A program made the translations under genes and the position numbers. Under the pieces are notes generated by a model. It did not search any database and had not been told where the DNA came from. It saw only the letters and a program-made list of their open reading frames with translations. 64,000 nucleotides of DNA from assembly GCA_002189035.1 (NCBI GenBank), contig NEEC01000013.1:1736001-1800000 (forward strand), given 5' to 3'. Positions 27,948 through 57,267 of the stretch are shown one piece after another (positions within the stretch are counted from its first letter, which is position 1; every line of letters begins with the position of its first letter). Source of the DNA: Utricularia gibba. Lineage: Eukaryota; Plantae; Magnoliophyta.

Positions 27948-30667
27948 CTACAGAATGGCCATCTGCTCCGCCACGGAGGCCAAAGCTTGCATCGTGCGCA
28001 CAATCTCCACCGTGTCGTCGAGGTAATACTTGGCCTTGCTCGGCTTCCGGCCGACGGTGCAGGCAAAAACTTCTGCGCTTGGGGCGATGGATGGGCCAGC
28101 CATTGAGCTCATAATGACTTCAAACATGTCTTCATCTGATCGATCGTCCCCGATGCAGAGCACAAAGTCTGGCGACAATTCCTTCTCCTTCATCGATGAC
28201 AGCAGCCGTTTTGCGACGAGTCCCTTGCTCACTCCCTGTTTGTGCACCAGAGCTAAGGCGTGATCATCACTGGATATGGGATATGTAAAAGGAGAAGTGT
28301 GGAAGCTGGCGCACCTGTGGCTTAACCTCAACGTAGTTGACGCCGCTCTTTACAGTAACGGGTTCGTTGGCGAGCACACTCTCGAGGTGATCAAGGAGCT
28401 CTTTTGCTTGACAGGATCCGAAATCGGGATCAGAATCCTCGTAGCTCCAAGCCATGGCTGTTTCCTTGAGCTCGATGACTGAGCCGTCGGTTGTCTCTGT
28501 GTAAAGGTGCATCACGGGCTCTGCAATCTGCTTCCAGTTGCATTCCGTGACAGGCCCCATGGCTTCCCATTCATCGTCGCGCTTCATCCTGAGACCAGTT
28601 TTCTGCTTCAGAAGCTGAAGACGAGGATACGAATGGGGAGAAGGAATTATGCATGTACCTCATGAAATAGCCATGCTCGGCAGCAATCCCCAGCTTGTCA
28701 CAAGTCAAAAACCATTCAGCCAGCTCGTCCCTGCGCCTGGCACTGACTATAAAAACCGTATTGTTCCTGTCTCTGCACAAGCTGTTGAGAATGCCTAATG
28801 TCTCCACGCTCGGTTTCTTGTCAATTGAGCTTTGAGGCATCAAAGTTCCATCGTAGTCGAGAAGAAGGGCTCTGGTGGTGCTTCTCTTGTAAGCTGAAAC
28901 AATATGCTCCATGGCTAACTTCCTGAAGTTTGGATCAAGAGCCACGACACGAAATCGCAGGCCGAACCCAATACCCCAGCATCTTCTATGTGAATGATCC
29001 TTGCAGGCTCGCTCTAAATCTTGCAAGAAACTACGTGACCAGTAGGCAACATCATGTGTGCTAACATACTTGTAATGTTTTTCATGTCTCAGCTGCTTCT
29101 CCGGCTCCGGCATTACGAGGGCGAGATCCATCGCTTCCGCCACCATGTCGATGTTCCAGGGGTTCACTCGCAGCGCACCACTTAAAGAAGGAGAACACCC
29201 AATGAACTCTGATACAACCAGCATGCTCTTCTTGGGAGCACCTTTATCCAATCCTGAAACACTGTCCAGTATTCCATTCCCTTGTCTGCTGATTATATAC
29301 TCATATGGAATGAGATTCATCCCATCCCTCACTGCAGTAACCAGGCAGCATTCAGCAACAACATAATATGCAATTCTCTCGTAAAACTTAAGGGGCCGGT
29401 CGATCAAGATAACAGGATCATATCCTGGTTCGCCAAACATGCTGTTTATTCGCTTCACTGCTGCATAAGTCTCATCCTGAACTTCCTTCACGTCCTTCCC
29501 TTTGCCTCGAGCAGGATTTGCTATCTGCACTAGAACAACCTTCCCCTTCTTCTCCGGGTGCTGCAGAAGGAGCTGCTCCATTGCCAATAACTTCAAGCTA
29601 ATACCCTTGAAGATATCCATGTCATCTACTCCAAGCAGCATCGTCCTCCCCTCCAAAGAAAACTGCTTCATCAGCTCTGCTACCTTTGCCTCTGTCTCGG
29701 GGAGGCTTAAGACAGATTGAAGCTGGCCCATATGAATTCCAACAGGAAGAATCTTGATGCTCACCGTTCGGCCGTAGTATTCAAGTCCTATATATCCTCT
29801 TTTCGACTCATAAGACAAACCTAGCATCCTACTGCAACAAGAAAGAAAATGGCGAGCGTAATCGAATGTGTGGAATCCGATCAAGTCTGAATTGAGCAAA
29901 GCACGCAAAAGCTCTTCCCTGATCGGCAATGTCTTGTAAATCTCAGATGATGGGAATGGACTGTGCAGGAAGAAACCAAGCTTCACTCTGTTGAACCTCT
30001 TTCTCAAGAAAGAAGGTAGAACCATAAGATGGTAGTCATGAATCCAAACATAATCGTCTTCAGGACTTATAACTTCCATGATTCTATCAGCAAATATTTT
30101 GTTCACAGATACATAAGCCTGCCAGAGTGATCGGTTAAACCGACCGCCGAGATCCGGAGACAATGGCAGCATGTAGTGAAACAAAGGCCACAGCTGCTGC
30201 TTACAGAATCCATGATAGTACCGTGTGAATAAATCCTGTGGCAGAAACGTAGGGACACACCTAAAGGTCTCCAGGAGTATCTGAGAAACTTCATCTTGAT
30301 CATTTGGATGAATATCTTCACTCAAACAACCAACGTATATAAACTCAACGTCTTCGTCTCCCAGCCCATCTTTGAGCTGGAGGAGAAGTGAATTCTCATC
30401 CCAACTGAAGCTCCAGCCTCGACTACCATCAGTTCTTCGATTCGCCTTCAATGGGAGCTGATTCGCCACAATTATAACCCGGTCCCTTTGCGCAGACGAA
30501 GATGAAGGATCAGACACGACACTGTCAGCTCCATCGTCTTCTATGTCAGAAATTATCCCAGGAACTGTCATCACACGAGGTAATCGCCGGCTTATCCGGC
30601 TGAAAGACGGTGCCGGAGCATCGCCAGAGACTAGCTCCAGCAAGTTTGAATATGAACGAGAAACCAT
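27948..30667 (-). CDS. TPS6: Class II trehalose-6-phosphate synthase/phosphatase (3 exons: 30667-28659, 28588-28315, 28235-27948)
   Basis: MVSRSYSNLLELVSG start, GT20 domain, and HAD motifs LLDYDGTLMP and CIGDDRSDEDMF. It is closest to Arabidopsis TPS6 as recalled (FSWDENSLLLQLKDGLGDE, KYYLDDTVEIVR). Confidence 0.93.
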
Positions 30668-41515: not shown

Positions 41516-42366
41516 TCAGATTCCATTCCTCAAGTCATTGTAACAGAAGGAGTCTACCTGGGATCCATTCCCAACTTTGGTCTTCACAGTGATGCCATCA
41601 ACACCAGCAACGATCAAGGAGGTGGCCAAGCCGATAAACATACCATGCTCCACAATTCCAGGGAGTCTCAAGATTGCATCACTTGCTGCATTAAGATCAC
41701 CAATATCTCTCTCAAAGTACAAATCAATGATGTAGTTCCCGTTATCAGTCACATATGGTTTCCCAGTATCAGGAGAGTTTCTCAACATTGCAACGCAGCC
41801 TGCATCACAAAACAGAGCTGCAAGTCTATTCAAGGAATGGTTCCAACAGAAGGGAATAACCTCCACGGGCATGGCCAATCTGCTTCCCCCAACATAGTTG
41901 ACTAGCTTGGATTCATCAACTATGACGATGAATCTCTTGCTTGCTGACTCCACCATTTTCTCCCGCAACAGAGAACCCCCACGCCCTTAACCAAATTCAT
42001 AAAAGGGTCAACTTCATCTGCTCCATCGATGGCTAAATCAACCACAGGATGTGAATCAAGATCAGACAACGGGATACCCAAGGAGACAGCTTGCTGGTGA
42101 GTTATCGTCGAAGTGGGTATGCCCACGATATCCTTCAGCTTCCCCTGTTTCAAAAGCTGCCCAATTCTGTCTACAGCATGTTTCGCTGTCGAACCTGTGC
42201 CCAGCCCCAGCACCATGCCGGATTCAACGTACTCAACAGCCTTGTGAGCGGCAATCTTCTTCAAATCATCCTGTGTCAGGCTCACGGCTAAACTATGGGA
42301 AGAAGAAACGGATGAGGAAACCATAAGCTTGGCCGGCTCGTGGCCCTCCGTGTAGGCGGCAGCCAT
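41516..42366 (-). CDS. RPI: Ribose-5-phosphate isomerase A, cytosolic type, intronless, with an apparent -1 frameshift at 41984-41986
   Basis: LTQDDLKKIAAHKAVEYVESGMVLGLGTGST, DGADEVDPFMNLVKG[RGGS]LLREKMVE, VTDNGNYIIDL and PGIVEHGMF. One missing base splits the KGRGGSLLREK motif. Confidence 0.92.
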
Positions 42367-42672
42367 GTTCAATCCAACTACTTGGTTGCATAAAACCAGT
42401 AATCCGCAAGATAAGAACTGGATGACCAACCGGTTTTCTGTATCATGAAGAAGTGGTGTTCGACGCTTTGCCTGAGAGAATATAAATAAAATAATGGAGT
42501 AAGTACGGAAAAAATCTTGTCCACTAGCAGCCGTATCATGCCAAATGTCAGACCAAGAACGTGGATGACTGCCTGATGGCTTATCCCTGGCAATCCAAAT
42601 GACAGTTTGCTTTCTCCTCATGAGAGTTCCGCAATTCGCTCGAGTAGCATGCAGAAGAAGCGAAATTGGATA

Positions 42673-43599
42673 ATGGGGATTCAGGGAAGTGTCGACCCAC
42701 CCCAGGTTAAATTATTCGCTTCTGAGGGGTATTTGGTGCTGGAACCTTTCGCCGGTGGGGAGGAAGTGAACTTGTTGAGGTCGAAAATGGATGAAATACC
42801 CAGTCGATTTGATTGTTCAAGTTTGTATCTTCTCCACAAAAAACCCAGGTGAATATGCAATAACAGGGTTTTTTTCGTATGTATTTCCTGTTCGCTGGAG
42901 TTGATTTGGTTACCTCAATTCTGTGCTGCTGGTCTTTACTAGGTTCAGATATTGAATGTGGATGATTATGTTTTTGAAAGTGCTGAGGAGATCTCCTTCT
43001 TCCTTGAAGGTGTGTGCAGCTTTGTAACTCAACTGCAGTTGGGTAAGGGGATGCTTTGTTCCAATCTGGTTCACTTTCTCTGCATTGAAACTTCACATTT
43101 CTTATGGAGTCCTTATGTGTAGTGCTGCCTGGTTTTGGCAGAAAATGCATTTGATGATGATGGGAAACTGAAGCAACCAAAGCAACTATCCATTAACACA
43201 ATTGGACATGGTTCGCTTCCACATCTGTTGGCTTATTTCTCTGAAGATTGGTTCAGATGGACTGGTGAGGAGATTCATCAGAGACGAAGCAGGGTTTCAC
43301 TTTGATAAGACATCTCCTTCTTATTACAAGAAAGATTTCATCCCAATTGAACTCAAACCTGGATCCTTGATTATCATCCACCAGAGGCATGTCTCTAAAA
43401 TATTGATATCCTTCACAACATTCGAAAAGTACCATCAATGGCTGCAAATGGCTTGAGGATGACTGGTAAGTCCATAGATCAGAGGGGAAAAAATGACTTT
43501 TCCCTTGTACATGCTTCTCAGTAGTAACTAGAATCATCCATTTCTTGCGCTTCTAGAATTCCAGGAGCTGTGAACCCTGAACCTCTCTATGCTTCATGA
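42673..43599 (+). pseudogene. Phytanoyl-CoA dioxygenase (PAHX family) pseudogene with its central exons deleted
   Basis: Exons QVKLFASEGYLVLEPFA, DDYVFESAEEISFFLE, AFDDDGKLKQPKQLSINTIGH, GLVRRFIRDE...IELKPGSLII and NPEPLYAS* remain. The exons carrying the HQD iron motif are missing, and exon 1 has a frameshift. Confidence 0.85.
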
Positions 43600-44192
43600 G
43601 TTATCTTTGAAAAACAGTTTGCTTCATGCATCATAGACTTGTTGATGGAACAGTATTCATCAGTTATGATTTGTCTCATTGATCTGTTCTGTAAGCCACA
43701 CTGCATATCCCCTGCTTACATTTCTCATAGAACTCAGACATTCAAGCCCATGACTGTAAATGCATTCTTGAAACTACCAGGAAATACATAGCTTTGCAAT
43801 GCTTATTCAATTAGATGTCTCTGACCCAAGTTTCAAATTTTGCTTGAAGTTTGGAAAAGCGGTGAATGATTATTTTTTTTATTAAATACTAATAATTTAT
43901 TATTTTATTTTAAAAAATGTATATATATATATATTAAGAAGTACCTTTTTCTAAATGTAATCAAATAAAATTTATACAATTTTTGTATGGAATTATACAA
44001 TAGATAAATTTTCATATTATTTTTTCTCTTAATTTAAAAAAATATAAATATGAATTAATTTTTTAAAATACTAAGAATATGTTCTCAAAATGTGATACAC
44101 ACACCCGGTTTTTTTATTACCCGAAGGCAACGACTAAATTACATGCACCTTCACAATCACCCAAACCGGCTACCGAGTTACAAACGAGTCAT

Positions 44193-45793
44193 TCAAAACT
44201 CTCGGCTCTCGCGGCCGGTCCACGCGGAGGCGGCGATAAGCGGGCGCATGTGCCACCCCAGCATCAAGCAACCGCCGTCCTCGGCCACGGTGTACCCATC
44301 ACCGCCGTCGACGGCGACGAGTTCCGTCGCCAACTTGTACACGTTGGAGCCGTGATGAACCGGGAGGAACCCGTGGGAACCGAACCGGGTTCTCCACTGT
44401 GACAGCGTCTCGTGTCTCTCGACGCGCTCCGGTCCTTCTCCGGCAACCACGTTGTGAATCTGCTGCCCCAGGTACACCTCGCTCATCAATTTATCCTCGT
44501 CGCCGCCGCGGCCGCCGCTTTCGAGGGAATCGAAGAGGGTTGAGTAGTGATGGAGCGCTTCAGTGAACCGGTCTAGGAAGATGCTGCTGTTGTGGTTGGC
44601 TTCTTGCTCCGCTATGGTGAAGATCAATGGATTCAACTGATGAACCAATTGCAGAACTTTGTCGATGGCGCCGGGATTGGCAAGCAACTGGTGCAAATCC
44701 AGGATGGAGTTTACTGCTAAGGCTTCGCCTTCTTGAATCTCGAGCATGGAGGGATTGAGGTCAGCCAAGGAATTGGTCACAAAGCTACGGAAACGGAATT
44801 CGATATTCATGGCACCGGCGAATTCAGCTAACGTTAGCCCCACTGTATTCAAATCATCATGCGAAGGAGGAGCGATTCCGGTGAGGCGGAAAGTGGGAGC
44901 CCCGCCGTCTTGGGTAGCCAGAGCGTATAGCAACGGCGGCCACTGCACACCGTGGTTGATGCTGAAATCAATGACATGAACACGTTTCTTACCGGAAAAA
45001 GCTTCTAGAATCGCTTGATTCGCAGTGAAATGAGCGAACTTGAGATACGGACACGTCTCGTAGAAATGCCTCTGCAACAAATTGGCATCGGAGAAAGCTG
45101 CAGAGCCCTGACTCATCATGGGATTCCAGCAGTAAATTCTCTGCGCCAAAGCTTCCACGAAATAGGTAGCAACTTTTCTCATAGCCCCGGCTTGAGAAAC
45201 AGCGAAGAAAACCACTTTCTTCAAGAAAGCTTCCGCCGCTGTAAAATTCTCCTCCTGCACAGCTTCCGCGCACGCCATTAGCGAATGAACGAGCCTTATC
45301 CCGTTCTCCTGCGAGTCCAGAACCACAGACCGCTTCTCCTGAAAGCAGCCCTTCTGAGACGGCGAGGTTTTGACTTTCTTCAGGGGTGGGTAAACAGCTT
45401 TCCCAGGTACAGAACCAAGATCCGACCCAAAATCAAGGTCAACAGAAGCGGTAACACTGCAATTATCAGGGGAGGGAAAACGGGGCATGGGATCGAGGCC
45501 AGAGAGCATAGATCCAAGCCAGGACGAGAGATCTGCCGGATTGTAATGAACAGTCTCATCGGACGCGAGTTGACAAAGACCCTCTTCGCTACCCATAGCC
45601 ATCTCAATCTGACCAATCTTCCGAGCAACATCCGCCATCTCCGATGACTTGAGGACGTACCCAAGCGCCGCGAAAAACTCGTCTTCCTCGGATTCAGAGA
45701 CATCATGAGCCCCCCACATGTTGGGTTTATCAGCTGATTCACAAACCCCTGTTTCTCTCGACCCTGCTTTTCAAAAACCCTCCTTTTCTTCAT
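44193..45793 (-). CDS. Divergent DELLA-type GRAS protein, intronless; main ORF 44193-45719, probable true start at 45793 across a -1 frameshift
   Basis: [94 protein letters not shown] and [16 protein letters not shown]. Confidence 0.93.
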
Positions 45794-47355
45794 CCTGAGC
45801 AGCAGACAACAGCCAAGAATCGGATTGGAGCAACGGTGCTTGGTTTTTCACAGACTGCAGCAACAGCAGCAGTAGCAGCATCTGTTTCCGTGCGTTTGTA
45901 TGGGAAATCGGAGAAGGAGAGAGAAGCGCACCCGCAGAGTGTGGGGTTGTGTGGCCATGGGATGGAGATGCCATTGGACCTTGGGAGGGTATAATATACT
46001 AATCCTGGTGGGTAGAATATACTACTCATCCCCTGATCAAAGTTATCCACAAAAATTCCCCAGTTTTCTTTTTATTCTCCTCATAAATCAAATACCCCAT
46101 TTATTATTTCTAATAAAACAATGATATTCAATATCTAGAAAAATATAAGTCACTAATATAATTACGATATTTTACATCAATTACCAATGAAATAGAAAAA
46201 ATATTTAAATATAAATATTTTTAATCTTTTATAATATATTTCTTTATAATAAAATATATATAAAATCATAATAATTGAATATTCAAAATAAACAATATTA
46301 TAGTTATTACAACTAAATTATAAATCATCTATCATCATATTTCACCATTTGTGCTTCGCCATTCCTAGACAACATAATAGTAGAGTCCACATGAACTAGT
46401 ATTTCATAAAAATATCGTTTGATATTATGATATTAATATATTTAAATATAATATAATTTGATATATATATATATATATAATCAATTATACAGTATATAAT
46501 AAATTAAGTGTTTGATATACGATAATAGAAATTTAAGGTATAATAGTCGAAGACTCACAAAAAAACACATCAGTTAGAATTTGAGAAAATATATATTAGT
46601 ATAGATATAATTAATACTTCATCCATTTATGTATATTATACATATATTTAAAAAATAGGTAGGTAAGACATATCTATTTTAGTTAAATAAATAAATAAAT
46701 ATATATATATATAAATTTTTTATACTATATTATACAACAAACTCAAATTGTATTGTAGTTTATTTGAAATACGCCCATGGTATCGATCGATCACCTTTTC
46801 CTTTGGTTGTTTCATGATTTTTTTTAATTGTTCGACGCCTTTAATGATTAGATGCCACTAGACATGACCCACAAACAGTGCAGTTGATTACAACCCTATC
46901 CATTGTAAGATTACGACAATTATTCGGACTCAAGTGTACTTTCTAGTTTATTACAAATCGTAACAACTTTCCCATTGGAGGAGGGGTTCCTGTACATTAT
47001 TAGTTCCTGATGGTGACTAATAAGTGTAATTAAATCTCAATAATTGAATCAACACACAAACAATTAATTATAATATGGTTCCCATGGTCCCCCTTACTTA
47101 TTTATTTATTTATGGCATTTTCCTTTTATTAAAGTATTTCTACTTTTGTGTCCTTAGCGTGTATGAGATACAAATTTAGGATCCTCCTTTTTGGGATCTT
47201 ATATTATCATCCTCTTGCTATTTAGTTAGTGTTTGATTGATTGTAATAAAATAAAATGGATTTAAAAAATGTAACATAGAAGTATTAACATATTACAACA
47301 TTTTTGCGGTAGTCAACATGAAGATTTCCTAAAGACTAAGATAAGTCCATCCTTT

Positions 47356-47609
47356 GAGATCTAACCTTCATCGAATGATCAGACTTTCATGAACCAATAT
47401 GATCTTTTCAGAACGAGTTTCGAAACAGTATTTTATGTGTAACCACAATATTCATATTTTTTAAAGTATCGTAATATTTATGTCATACTCATCATAGGTA
47501 ACATACTTATAAAGATAACATAAGACTATTATTCGAGATCCAACTTTCATCGAAAGACAGAACTTTCATGGACTAATGCAGCTACCTTAGAACATACTTC
47601 GAAACTGTA
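47356..47609. repeat. Degenerate direct repeat with 179-bp period (two copies)
   Basis: 75-nt segments starting at 47356 (GAGATCTAACCTTCATCGAA...) and 47535 (GAGATCCAACTTTCATCGAA...) match at 51/75 ungapped positions by hand count. Similarity extends upstream (TAAAGA..AA.ATAAG). Confidence 0.7.
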
Positions 47610-48704
47610 AGATATCACAACAAAAAAAGTGAAAGGTTTTATCAACGTTTGGATGTTTGTTACCACCACCCTAGTTTTGATTTATTCACCCTTTATAAGG
47701 GTACGCTATTGGTCACATGTCTACGTTATGTTTTTTTTTTATATAATTATCTGTATGAGATAAATGAAGATAAGTATTTTTTATTATATAATGTTTAATG
47801 TTTGTTGAGTGGAGAGAAGTAGGGGGCTGTACGCCATGATCATGGCGCACCACAAGGATTAGGTGGATTCAGATAGATGTTGGGGATAAGGAAGAAGCAG
47901 AAGCTAGGAAAGACAGAAAGCGAGTAAAGGCCCCAGGTGAACGCCTTGCCAGTTCATTCAACTTCAAGCCAACCCATGTTTCACCCAAGTGGAATTTCGT
48001 CCAGAAAAAAAAGAGGGGAGGACTTTAATCTTTCTACGAAGCAGGTAACATTAATGGAACTCAATCATTGGTTGCTTTGCTTTCACCCCTTTTTCACTTT
48101 TCGCTTTAAAGTTTCCTGAACTCTTTTACTCGTGACGCGAGTCGGGGCTTCTGTTCTTTTTCTTTGAATGTTGCGCGCAATGTGTTCGACGTATTGCTTG
48201 AACGAGAAGTGGGCTTTGGTCCGTGGACCGATTGGCTGCCTTTAACGGGCTGTATAGAAATGGGCCGATGGGCCGTGAGATTTAAATTACATTATTTGCA
48301 GAATTTCCTCATCATTCTGAACTGTCACGCACGCTGCCATTTTTTTTTCACATGGTCTCGTGCCACATTTTTATATAGCCTCCAAGAATCTTATCCTTCC
48401 TGCTAATTTTTTTATAGCCTTGTCGGGTTTTTGATACAATTTCAACCTATTCCCAAATGAAAAAGAAATTGGATCGATTTGATTAGTTTTTATGCTTTTA
48501 CAATATTTTCAGACTTTTGGTTGTATTTTTGAAATTTCGGTTTTTGGGTTTAATTTGAACGTTGATTCAGTTTACATGATATTATTCGTTTTAAGTATTT
48601 AATTATTACAATTTTAAGTTTTTTTTTATATGTGGCTAAAAAGATCACTCATCCAACATTGTCCAAAAGTATAGTTTTTTTTTTTTTTTTTTGTATTTGT
48701 TGGT

Positions 48705-49326
48705 TTATGAAATGATCACAACTTTTGCCACGAAGTTATTCACGAGAGCCAAGGCGTTGCTTGTGGCCTCCATCACCTTCACCGTCCGATTGCAGATATC
48801 GCGCTTCATCGGACCATCGGCGGCTCCCTGGAATCCATCCGTACACGTGTCCTCATCCGTCAGCGCAGCGCTCATCCACGTCTGCACGTTGCTGACCTGG
48901 AACCTCAGCTCCTCCCCGCGGCGCCGGTGAGATTCCTCATCTGCTTCAGGGAGTCCCTTATCTGATGCACCGCGCTATTGAACACGCTCCGGCAGTCGCG
49001 CAGCGCGGCGACGGAGCGTGGGTCGGGGGGTTGTCCATGGAAACGTAGACAGCTTCCAGGTACGAGGACATGCTCTTGGCTCCAGAAAGGCTGACGCCGA
49101 TGGCAACGACGGCGAGTCGAGCCGGGTCCCCGTTGATTCTGTTGGAGTAGTTGTAGAGGGAGCGGTAGCAGAGTTGTGGGTATAGGGTTGCAGAACAGCT
49201 CAGGCGGATGAACTCCGAGGAGTTTCGATCGGAAAGCGGCACTCCGGCAGACGCCGCGGCGGAGCAGGCCGTGAGAAAGAGCCCCAGCAGTAGTACTACC
49301 CTCATGTCTTTTACTACAAACTTCAT
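48705..49326 (-). CDS. PMEI: Pectin methylesterase inhibitor / invertase inhibitor (PMEI), intronless, with two apparent -1 frameshifts (49025-49030 and 48914-48917)
   Basis: A signal peptide precedes FIRLSCSATLYPQLCYRSL, AALRDCRSVF and SNVQTWMSAALTDEDTCTDGF...SNALALVN. All four conserved Cys are present across three frames. Confidence 0.88.

Positions 49327-53838: not shown

Positions 53839-57267
<3,429 letters not shown>

Follow-up and report, generated by a model that had tools for sequence, protein, structure and literature searches.

DELLA proteins are the central brake of plant growth, and small changes at their interfaces with GID1 and SLY1 gave the Green Revolution dwarfs. [quoted passage not shown] On the receptor side of Arabidopsis RGA, E67 forms an ionic bond to R13 of GID1A (bioRxiv 10.1101/2025.02.08.637281) and S94, at the last position of VHYNP[T/S], hydrogen-bonds R51 of GID1 (PMC13470054). 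On the side of the F-box protein, Q341 hydrogen-bonds S130 of SLY1, the Q341R substitution (that of Brrga1-d) abolishes SLY1 binding and yields a dominant GA-insensitive dwarf, and M545 and L345 are hydrophobic SLY1 contacts (PMC12358861); the salt bridges of K541 to D123/E124 of SLY1 are essential (PMC13470054). Natural DELLAs with degenerate motifs exist, such as plum PslRGA, which fails to bind GID1 and does not respond to GA (PMC5226729), and the GID1 and SLY1 interfaces are now engineered deliberately (PMC13470054).

Here we describe a DELLA gene of Utricularia gibba, a rootless aquatic carnivore, that lies in a window of 64,000 nucleotides (the whole stretch of DNA that was analysed; Table 1). 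Our literature search found no paper on the DELLAs of Utricularia or of Lentibulariaceae. A preliminary description of this sequence had read the N-terminal motifs of the gene as a remodelled GA-sensing domain and had proposed a GA-hyposensitive or SUMO-uncoupled paralog.

Table 1. Features of the DELLA gene and of its linked marker in the window (residues numbered from the window ATG; substitutions in RGA numbering)
Feature	Positions	Strand	Remarks
DELLA coding sequence	44193..45719	(-)	508 codons + stop, intronless; X1 RNA contig identical across the whole CDS
Probable true N-terminal extension, including VCESADKPN	45720..45793	(-)	not in frame with the window ORF, as a C-run lacks one C after 45745
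Transcript extent in RNA-derived contigs	44082..45953	(-)	~1.87 kb, unspliced
DEFFA (DELLA motif)	45669..45683	(-)	aa 13-17; fourth-position F normal for Lamiales, third-position F nearly private (2/120 others)
IGQIE (LExLE motif)	45603..45617	(-)	aa 35-39; first I is the clade norm, G at the variable site RGA E67, second I private
TVHYNPA	45534..45554	(-)	aa 56-62; TVHYNP fully canonical, following Ser/Thr is Ala (S94A; 1 other of 120)
VHIID-region part of the SLY1/GID2 groove	44913..44954	(-)	aa 256-269; Q332H, M/L334V, A338P, Q341Y, L345T
SAW helix alpha-12, SLY1-contacting	44310..44336	(-)	aa 462-470; K541 kept; Q542L, M545E, L549V
Class II trehalose-6-phosphate synthase (TPS6-like), first exon	28571..30667	(-)	linked marker and rate control

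The gene, its transcript and its relatives

The window protein carries a DELLA domain at residues 13-79 (Pfam PF12041, 81.4 bits against a cut-off of 23.8, positions 1-68 of the 69 in the profile) and a GRAS domain at residues 143-501 (Pfam PF03514, 406.8 bits, E=1e-121, full length over profile positions 1-374 of 374). It aligned with the solved RGA chain at E=2.7e-175, so the match is not due to chance, and its GRAS part covered RGA residues 180-581. The open frame of more than 500 codons reported in the preliminary description was borne out, and none of the RNA contigs across it contained a stop or a frameshift. Contigs from four runs, belonging to four studies, covered the DELLA gene, contrary to the lack of transcription that the preliminary description had named as a refutation of its proposal; the contigs of runs X1 and X9 spanned 44082-45953 and 44126-45956, respectively, and over the flanking intergenic DNA (46128-47300 and 43764-43960) there were no RNA contigs. 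In two of the runs the contigs also showed GT..AG joints in a neighbouring gene, which means that the contigs of those runs derive from RNA. The gene is a genuine, intact and transcribed DELLA.

Over 1872 nt the X1 contig departed from the window only by one extra C behind 45745, which was also found in the X9 contig and which brings an upstream ATG at 45793 into frame. Because the RNA contigs of two runs contain this C, the real protein is probably 533 aa long, starting with MKKRR 25 codons upstream, and the ATG of the window is probably internal. At 41983, an absent C of the same kind breaks the neighbouring gene, for ribose-5-phosphate isomerase, in two. An assembly artefact as the source of the motifs was ruled out, as the X1 RNA contig equals the coding sequence at every base, and so was a retrocopy, as all relatives are intronless too and the linkage to TPS6 is conserved.

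We compared the protein with its best 120 matches, all of them DELLA proteins. In the tree of the 121 DELLAs (the phylogeny that the preliminary description had called for), the window DELLA was nested in the Lamiales DELLAs as sister to Genlisea (SH-aLRT 93), and TPS6 of the same window was sister to Genlisea TPS6 (support 97). DELLA and TPS6 lie on one contig in Salvia, Buddleja, Andrographis, Orobanche, Castilleja, Lactuca and Actinidia. The exons of neighbouring genes were scanned singly; a DUF7054 gene followed each of the three Genlisea DELLAs, and tblastx of the Genlisea DELLA flanks against the window gave no match, hence we name no positional orthologue. The exact window protein was not found in sequence records, and a word search of 5.8 billion proteins gave no match closer than 64% and no congener orthologue among the matches.

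The receptor surface and the SLY1 groove

Residue by residue, the published GID1 contacts were largely preserved. In the DELLA motif (contact pattern D-e-L-L-a-phi-L-x-Y-x-V, with the consensus taken from PMC5226729) the residue class was kept at every contact position, the Leu at the last one being rare but seen elsewhere. In the LExLE pattern (M-A-x-V-A-x-x-L-E-x-L-E-x-phi) the M, A, V, A, second E and phi were kept, both Leu were replaced by Ile and the first E by Gly, while in the TVHYNP[T/S] motif and the L-x-x-W-x-x-x-M helix the TVHYNP, L, W and M were kept and the trailing Ser/Thr alone was Ala. On the GRAS side, the GID1 and bridge residues D213, E315, D478, E481, G536, S537 and E560 were kept and F540 was Tyr; the exception was the VVLV strand, which reads SVVL, its first-position Ser being shared with Genlisea. 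Among the GID1 and bridge residues that experiments have proven critical, all those that we checked were kept (PMC5226729, PMC12358861, PMC13470054). The private changes on this surface were only L46F, L69I, S94A and, at an already variable site, E67G; two polar contacts were lost (E67G and S94A) and all hydrophobic contact classes were retained. Altogether 9 of the 37 GID1 contact sites differed from the consensus, which is not above the background of ~28% and indicates that the GA-sensing surface is not specially remodelled. Judged by its residues, the GID1 docking surface is essentially intact, DEFFA and IGQIE being for the most part the usual Lamiales letters with conservative swaps added, and we infer that GID1 binding would persist. 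Since the docking surface appears essentially intact, the ordinary mechanism is the most likely one, and we favour, with moderate confidence, the reading that the gene encodes a fast-evolving Lamiales DELLA growth repressor, sister to Genlisea, which would act in the usual way.

Residues without a counterpart in the homologues were concentrated in the groove for SLY1, where the more unusual changes lie. Of its 16 sites (E297, F307, Q311, Q332, L334, P337, A338, Q341, L345, V372, K375, L376, K541, M545, L546 and V549), eight were kept, including F307, Q311, K541 and E297, and eight were changed, five of them to residues never seen in the 120 homologues (Q332H, Q341Y, L345T, K375T and M545E). 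Q341 is Gln in 117 of the 120, the exceptions being three Genlisea proteins with His, and both Q341 and M545 were replaced in all four Lentibulariaceae DELLAs sampled, the window copy having gone furthest (Tyr and Glu, together with L345T). The preliminary description had not mentioned Q341Y, M545E or L345T.

These residues raise a tentative and rather unlikely alternative, in which the degradation interface was re-tuned: GA-GID1 docking would be kept, and the altered groove (Q341Y, M545E, L345T, Q332H and A338P) would bind SLY1/GID2 less tightly, or would accept only a SLY1 that has co-evolved with it, making the protein more stable and GA-hyposensitive, a process that would have begun in the ancestor shared with Genlisea (Q341H, M545L). 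It is consistent with Tyr at the near-invariant glutamine whose change to Arg abolishes SLY1 binding in RGA (PMC12358861), with Glu and Thr at the hydrophobic contacts M545 and L345, with the location of M545E one helical turn past K541 on alpha-12, and with the frequency of never-seen residues, 5/16 at the SLY1-contact sites versus 29/347 at the remaining GRAS sites (Fisher p=0.011, in a test chosen after the data had been seen). However, the enrichment had p=0.085 when scored as any change, Tyr and His differ from Arg and may retain the hydrogen bond, the residues proven essential by mutation (F307, K541, E297, Q311, L376 and L546) are all kept, the SLY1 partner of the same species may compensate, and, with acceleration throughout the protein, some changes are expected on any surface. 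Ordinary GA-triggered turnover is not assured, given the never-seen groove residues including the change at Q341, and the SLY1-binding groove (Q341Y, M545E, L345T) is a better lead for a possibly less GA-degradable DELLA than the sensor motif. A wider version, which we regard as rather unlikely, is that the Lentibulariaceae DELLAs have collectively rewired the step from gibberellin perception to destruction; the window copy would then be either naturally stabilised or a member of a DELLA-SLY1 pair that has co-evolved.

The preliminary description had placed the cause in the sensor, so that LL to FF and LEQLE to IGQIE would themselves confer GA-hyposensitivity or SUMO uncoupling. We consider this decidedly doubtful. 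The letters DEFFA, IGQIE and TVHYNP were confirmed in the coding sequence and in the X9 allele, and QRIYC in place of RRIYR (R193Q) was confirmed in the window protein; the Gly at E67 and the Ala at S94 remove the partners of GID1A R13 and GID1 R51, the K-x-E around the SUMO lysine is lost, and PslRGA is a natural precedent for a DELLA without GID1 binding (PMC5226729). Half of the changes, however, are the normal Lamiales state. The second Leu of the DELLA motif is F in 62 and L in 58 of the 120 homologues, DELFA occurs in 55/120, including all named Lamiales sequences checked, and the first L-to-I change (KIxQLE) is found in 79/120, with KI[E/Q]QLE as the Lamiales norm. The E67 column is non-acidic (Gln, Lys or Val, with Gln in 18) in 21/120, including all three Genlisea aurea DELLAs. 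The occurrence of the motif in close relatives, which the preliminary description had named as a refutation, applies to half of it. The other changes are swaps among Leu, Phe, Ile and Val that preserve the hydrophobic contacts, where those of PslRGA are radical, and changes are no more frequent in the GID1 set than in the background. As to SUMO, the second Glu of IGQIE (RGA E70) and the preceding acceptor Lys (RGA K65) are retained, the latter in the context R-K-I-G, which does not fit the psi-K-x-E consensus; the K-x-E is equally absent in 21/120 homologues, among them all Genlisea copies, and its loss is therefore not special to the window copy. The preliminary description had used the Arabidopsis canon and not the relatives for comparison: the letters were right, and the term "remodelled" was an overstatement.

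Rate of evolution and selection

The protein as a whole has evolved unusually fast. The terminal branch of the window DELLA was 1.08, compared to a median of 0.11, and was the longest among the 121 DELLAs, and 36 of 245 near-invariant columns (conserved in at least 95%) were changed in the window protein against a median of 2. In Tajima relative-rate tests, the window DELLA had 109 unique changes versus 23 in Genlisea (p=7e-14), whereas for TPS6 the window was the slower lineage (24:47). As TPS6 is not accelerated while DELLA is, the acceleration is gene-specific. It was present in every domain (47-77% identity to the Lamiales consensus), and the window DELLA evolves ~5-10 times faster than its relatives over its whole length.

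Synonymous divergence from Genlisea and Salvia was saturated (NG86 dS 1.4-3.8 for DELLA, not computable for TPS6), so that at this depth only dN branch lengths and a ceiling on omega could be used; the pairwise omega to Genlisea was 0.154, which is an upper bound due to the saturation of dS. The window and X9 alleles differed at 1.2% of positions, none of them within 45500-45712, and their motifs were the same. With 11 synonymous differences at 348 sites and 7 non-synonymous differences at 1176 sites, pN/pS was ~0.19 (binomial p=5e-4 against neutrality), so that the dN/dS near 1 named in the preliminary description as the sign of a decaying copy was not what we found. Purifying selection is weakened but real, with omega at ~0.15-0.2 compared to ~0.05 in relatives. 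Each of the two alleles has derived residues at sites that are otherwise nearly invariant (A188V and R270Q in the window, G178R and G350D in X9), which would look like a progressive loss of constraint, and we infer that the acceleration reflects relaxed constraint following duplication. That the gene is a redundant copy, open and transcribed yet no longer needed and on its way to a pseudogene, would fit its longest branch and the radical derived changes in both alleles but is highly improbable, as the frame is open for 508 (probably 533) codons with RNA contigs free of stops and frameshifts, pN/pS is significantly below 1, long-term omega is at most ~0.15, and the structurally essential VHVID, LHR helices, PFYRE and SAW are gap-free against RGA.

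Comparison with described DELLA proteins

An expressed natural DELLA that keeps receptor docking and has unprecedented residues in the F-box groove, one of them precisely where a dominant GA-insensitive allele is known, would offer a ready-made test case, which could show how far the SLY1 interface can drift and whether its partner changes along with it. Should the protein behave normally, it would be no more than a rapidly evolving paralogue from a lineage whose molecular evolution is known to be fast, and the lesson would be to judge motif "anomalies" against the right clade and not against Arabidopsis.

With the GAI1-type DELLAs of Lamiales (Salvia, Perilla, Penstemon, Phtheirospermum and Genlisea aurea) the window protein shares the DELLA plus GRAS architecture, the intronless gene, the short N-terminus, the DELFA-type and KIxQLE-type motifs, Tyr at RGA F540 and the linkage to TPS6. 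It differs from them in being at most 64-69% identical to any, in its private L46F, L69I, S94A, R193Q, Q341Y, M545E and L345T, and in a C-terminal tail longer than the Lamiales SAWKLS ending; unlike all three Genlisea copies, it has no DUF7054 neighbour. With Arabidopsis RGA/GAI, known from the GA-GID1-DELLA-SLY1 complexes (PDB 2ZSH, 9O4J and 9LUM), it aligns over both domains and has in common D44, Y52, E70, H90-Y91-N92-P93, W99, D213, E315, D478, E481, G536, S537, E560, F307, Q311 and K541, while it departs from RGA at E67G, S94A, Q341Y, M545E, L345T, Q332H and A338P and has a much shorter poly-S/T linker. In rga-Q341R and Brassica rapa Brrga1-d the same SLY1-groove glutamine is substituted, but the window protein has Tyr in place of Arg, and its change is natural and tied to a family-wide one (His in Genlisea). 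Plum PslRGA and grape VvDELLA3 are likewise natural paralogues whose GID1-binding motifs are off canon; in both, contact residues are radically replaced (in PslRGA, Leu to Tyr/Ala, nonpolar to Asp, Ala to Arg, Trp to Glu), whereas in the window protein the swaps are conservative and TVHYNP is intact.

A divergent member of the DELLA subfamily

The intronless ORF encodes 508 residues with a full N-terminal DELLA domain (PF12041, 81.4 bits against a Pfam cut-off of 23.8) and a full-length GRAS domain (PF03514, E=1.1e-121). Solved chains of Arabidopsis RGA aligned to both domains with only small gaps (E=2.7e-175). The letters and placement in the preliminary description are correct, residues 1-73 corresponding to positions 45500-45719. 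The top database matches of the window protein were Lamiales DELLAs, at just 57-64% identity, and the protein collection searched contained no closer sequence. In a maximum-likelihood tree it grouped with three DELLAs of Genlisea aurea (SH-aLRT 93), a grouping also obtained in a 121-row FastTree, and the TPS6-like exon of the window was sister to Genlisea TPS6 (support 97). These placements assign the genome to a member of the Lentibulariaceae other than G. aurea, probably a bladderwort. Judged by these sequence tests, the window protein is a DELLA subfamily member, a highly divergent new one and no new kind.

Contigs from four public sequencing runs, belonging to four studies, lie on the DELLA gene. 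The contigs of two runs, X1 and X9 (the latter representing a second, divergent allele), contain GT..AG joints in the neighbouring gene at 42846/42941 and 43041/43141, and none of them covers the AT-rich positions 46128-47300, which identifies both sets as RNA-derived. In each set, one contig spans the DELLA gene (44082-45953 in X1, 44126-45956 in X9). X1 equals the window at every base of this span except for two single-base insertions, one after 45745 and one after 45821, both within homopolymer runs, and X9 shares the extra C after 45745. This C links an ATG at 45793 with the DELLA frame, and in relatives the DELLA proteins begin with MKRD, some 20-35 residues ahead of the DELLA motif, so the true product is probably 533 aa long. 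The C missing here from the window assembly would hide the DELLA start codon. Since a similar C, present as an insertion in the RNA contigs, is lost at 41983, which breaks the gene for ribose-5-phosphate isomerase into two ORFs, the assembly seems to carry homopolymer errors, with bases dropped in runs and ORFs broken.

DELLA and TPS6 genes are found on one contig in Salvia (two species), Buddleja, Andrographis, Orobanche, Castilleja, Lactuca and Actinidia, about 580 kb apart in Salvia divinorum. This linkage across relatives argues for an old chromosomal location of the DELLA gene and not for a stray copy. In Genlisea, a DUF7054 gene follows each of the three DELLA paralogues on the same strand (contigs L001, L005 and L006); the two genes form a conserved pair and were duplicated as a unit. 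The window contains no DUF7054 homologue. Gene density in the window is high, with a gene about every 5-7 kb, as is typical of highly compact plant genomes.

Features of the window around the DELLA gene
Feature	Position	Strand	Remarks
TPS6-like class II trehalose-6-phosphate synthase, first exon	28571-30667	-	698 codons; 86% identical to Lamiales TPS6; 14 kb from DELLA gene
Ribose-5-phosphate isomerase gene, split ORFs	41516-41968, 41920-42621		C lost at 41983
Three-exon gene, weak phytanoyl-CoA dioxygenase (PhyH) match	42574-43681	+	tail to tail with DELLA gene
Two introns of PhyH-like gene	42847-42940, 43042-43140	+	GT..AG, confirmed by contigs of two runs
DELLA gene, ORF	44193-45719	-	intronless
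AT-rich stretch upstream of DELLA gene	46000-48000		GC 0.28; no long ORFs, no RNA contigs; presumably promoter and intergenic region
ORF with pectin-methylesterase-inhibitor domain	48958-49326	-	signal-peptide-like start
Exon with poly(A) polymerase RNA-binding domain	56231-57193	+

Acceleration across the protein and the SLY1 groove

The truly unusual feature is an acceleration across the entire window protein. Its terminal branch has a length of 1.08 substitutions per site, where the median is 0.11 and the Genlisea copies have 0.12-0.48, and at the 245 columns conserved in at least 95% of 120 homologues it departs at 36, compared to a median of 2 and to 21, 19 and 10 for the Genlisea copies, which come next. 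Tajima's relative-rate test counted 109 unique changes in the window protein versus 23 in P0042, one of the Genlisea DELLAs (p=7e-14), and 88:48 and 86:54 against the two faster Genlisea copies, whereas for TPS6 the window lineage was the slower one (24:47). Non-synonymous branch lengths for window and Genlisea were 0.168 and 0.051 in DELLA, and 0.033 and 0.061 in TPS6. Identity to the Lamiales consensus was 68% in the DELLA domain, 47% in the linker, 73% in LHR1, 75% in VHIID, 64% in LHR2, 77% in PFYRE and 70% in SAW. As the TPS6 lineage is slow and all domains are affected, the acceleration is gene-specific, roughly five- to ten-fold, and the N-terminus is not its focus. The reading that we hold, with moderate confidence, to be the most likely is that of an ordinary-mechanism DELLA that would still dock GA-GID1 and, as part of a multi-copy family, would be under relaxed constraint and evolve rapidly.

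A live, if doubtful, alternative is that the interface with the F-box protein SLY1 was re-tuned or co-evolved. The GRAS residues that hold SLY1 are known from cryo-EM of RGA-SLY1 (PMC12358861, PMC13470054, bioRxiv 10.1101/2025.02.08.637281). Half of the 16 contact positions are retained (E297, F307, Q311, P337, V372, L376, K541 and L546, in RGA numbering) and half are altered (Q332H, M334V, A338P, Q341Y, L345T, K375T, M545E and L549V). Residues unseen in the 120 homologues occupy 5 of these 16 sites versus 29 of the 347 sites that make up the rest of the GRAS domain (Fisher p=0.011), an enrichment that falls to p=0.085 when any change is counted and that is a lead, the test having been picked after the data were seen. 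With Q341R, which is equivalent to the Brrga1-d mutation of Brassica rapa, SLY1 is no longer bound, and plants show dominant GA-insensitive dwarfism (PMC12358861). Among the homologues, only the three Genlisea proteins lack Gln at position 341 (His; Tyr in the window protein) and only they have Leu at 545 (Glu in the window protein). Because both residues are replaced in all Genlisea copies too, the groove change appears to have begun in the family ancestor and to have gone further in the window protein. Salt bridges between K541 and SLY1 D123/E124 are required for binding (PMC13470054), and M545E, an acidic residue a single helix turn past K541, would presumably weaken it.

The GID1-facing surface

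The preliminary description proposed a remodelled GA-sensing domain (DEFFA / IGQIE) and from these motifs a GA-hyposensitive or SUMO-uncoupled paralogue, which is unlikely as stated. Among the 120 best matches, the DELLA motif reads DELFA in 55, DELLA in 53, DEFLA in 2, DEHFA in 1 and DEAFA in 1 (a Genlisea copy), and the first position of LExLE is Ile in 79. Thus one L-to-F and one L-to-I change are the norm of the clade; the other two are L46F, shared with two of the matches, and L69I, which is private. Loss of the first acidic residue and of the K-x-E SUMO consensus is likewise a clade norm: E67 is replaced by Gln in 18 matches (including 3/3 Genlisea copies), Lys in 2 and Val in 1, and although the Gly of the window protein occurs in none, the site is variable. 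Two further changes in the GID1-contact set, V54L and S94A, recur in three matches and one match, respectively.

Compared to the contact consensus of the GAI-GID1A crystal (DeLLa-phi-LxYxV, MAxVAxxLExLEx-phi, TVhynPxxLxxWxxxM; quoted in PMC5226729), residue class is kept at all hydrophobic positions. E70, which hydrogen-bonds GID1A K28, is present, and E67, which forms an ionic bond with GID1A R13, is lost (bioRxiv 10.1101/2025.02.08.637281); Ala replaces the Ser/Thr that follows VHYNP and that hydrogen-bonds GID1 R51 (PMC13470054). All mutation-proven residues of the DELLA-GRAS bridge and the GRAS-GID1 contact are retained (Y91, G536, S537, E315, L211/D213, D478, E481, F540 and E560), with two sites spelled as in Lamiales or Genlisea (Tyr at F540, SVVL for VVLV). 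Altogether 9 of 37 GID1-related positions are off consensus, not above the GRAS-domain background of 28%; remodelling has not singled out the GA-sensing surface.

Selection and known systems

Synonymous sites are saturated between the window gene and its nearest relatives, so the pairwise omega of 0.154 between window and Genlisea is an upper bound only (Genlisea versus Salvia, 0.055). The X9 allele, an unsaturated comparison, differs from the window CDS at 1.2% of bases, with 11 synonymous and 7 non-synonymous differences (18 in total) over 348 and 1176 sites, giving a pN/pS of 0.19 (binomial p against neutrality 5e-4). Pseudogenisation, for which a dN/dS near 1 had been named as the mark, is thereby highly unlikely, even though derived changes at almost invariant sites occur in each allele: A188V and R270Q in the window allele (sites 98-99% conserved), and G350D, R311S and G178R in X9, the last in the SQAGAMRKV helix of LHR1 where all 120 homologues have Gly. 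The non-synonymous/synonymous ratio between alleles (0.64) is about equal to that between genera (at most about 0.5), a comparison in which nothing points to an adaptive burst. These data fit a DELLA gene that is still needed and has stayed under purifying selection, though of weakened force; they do not fit decay.

A literature search found no publications on DELLAs of the Lentibulariaceae. Degenerate receptor-binding domains have been described in other natural DELLAs, among them plum PslRGA and grape VvDELLA3 (PMC5226729); these carry radical replacements at contact sites, whereas the window protein does not.
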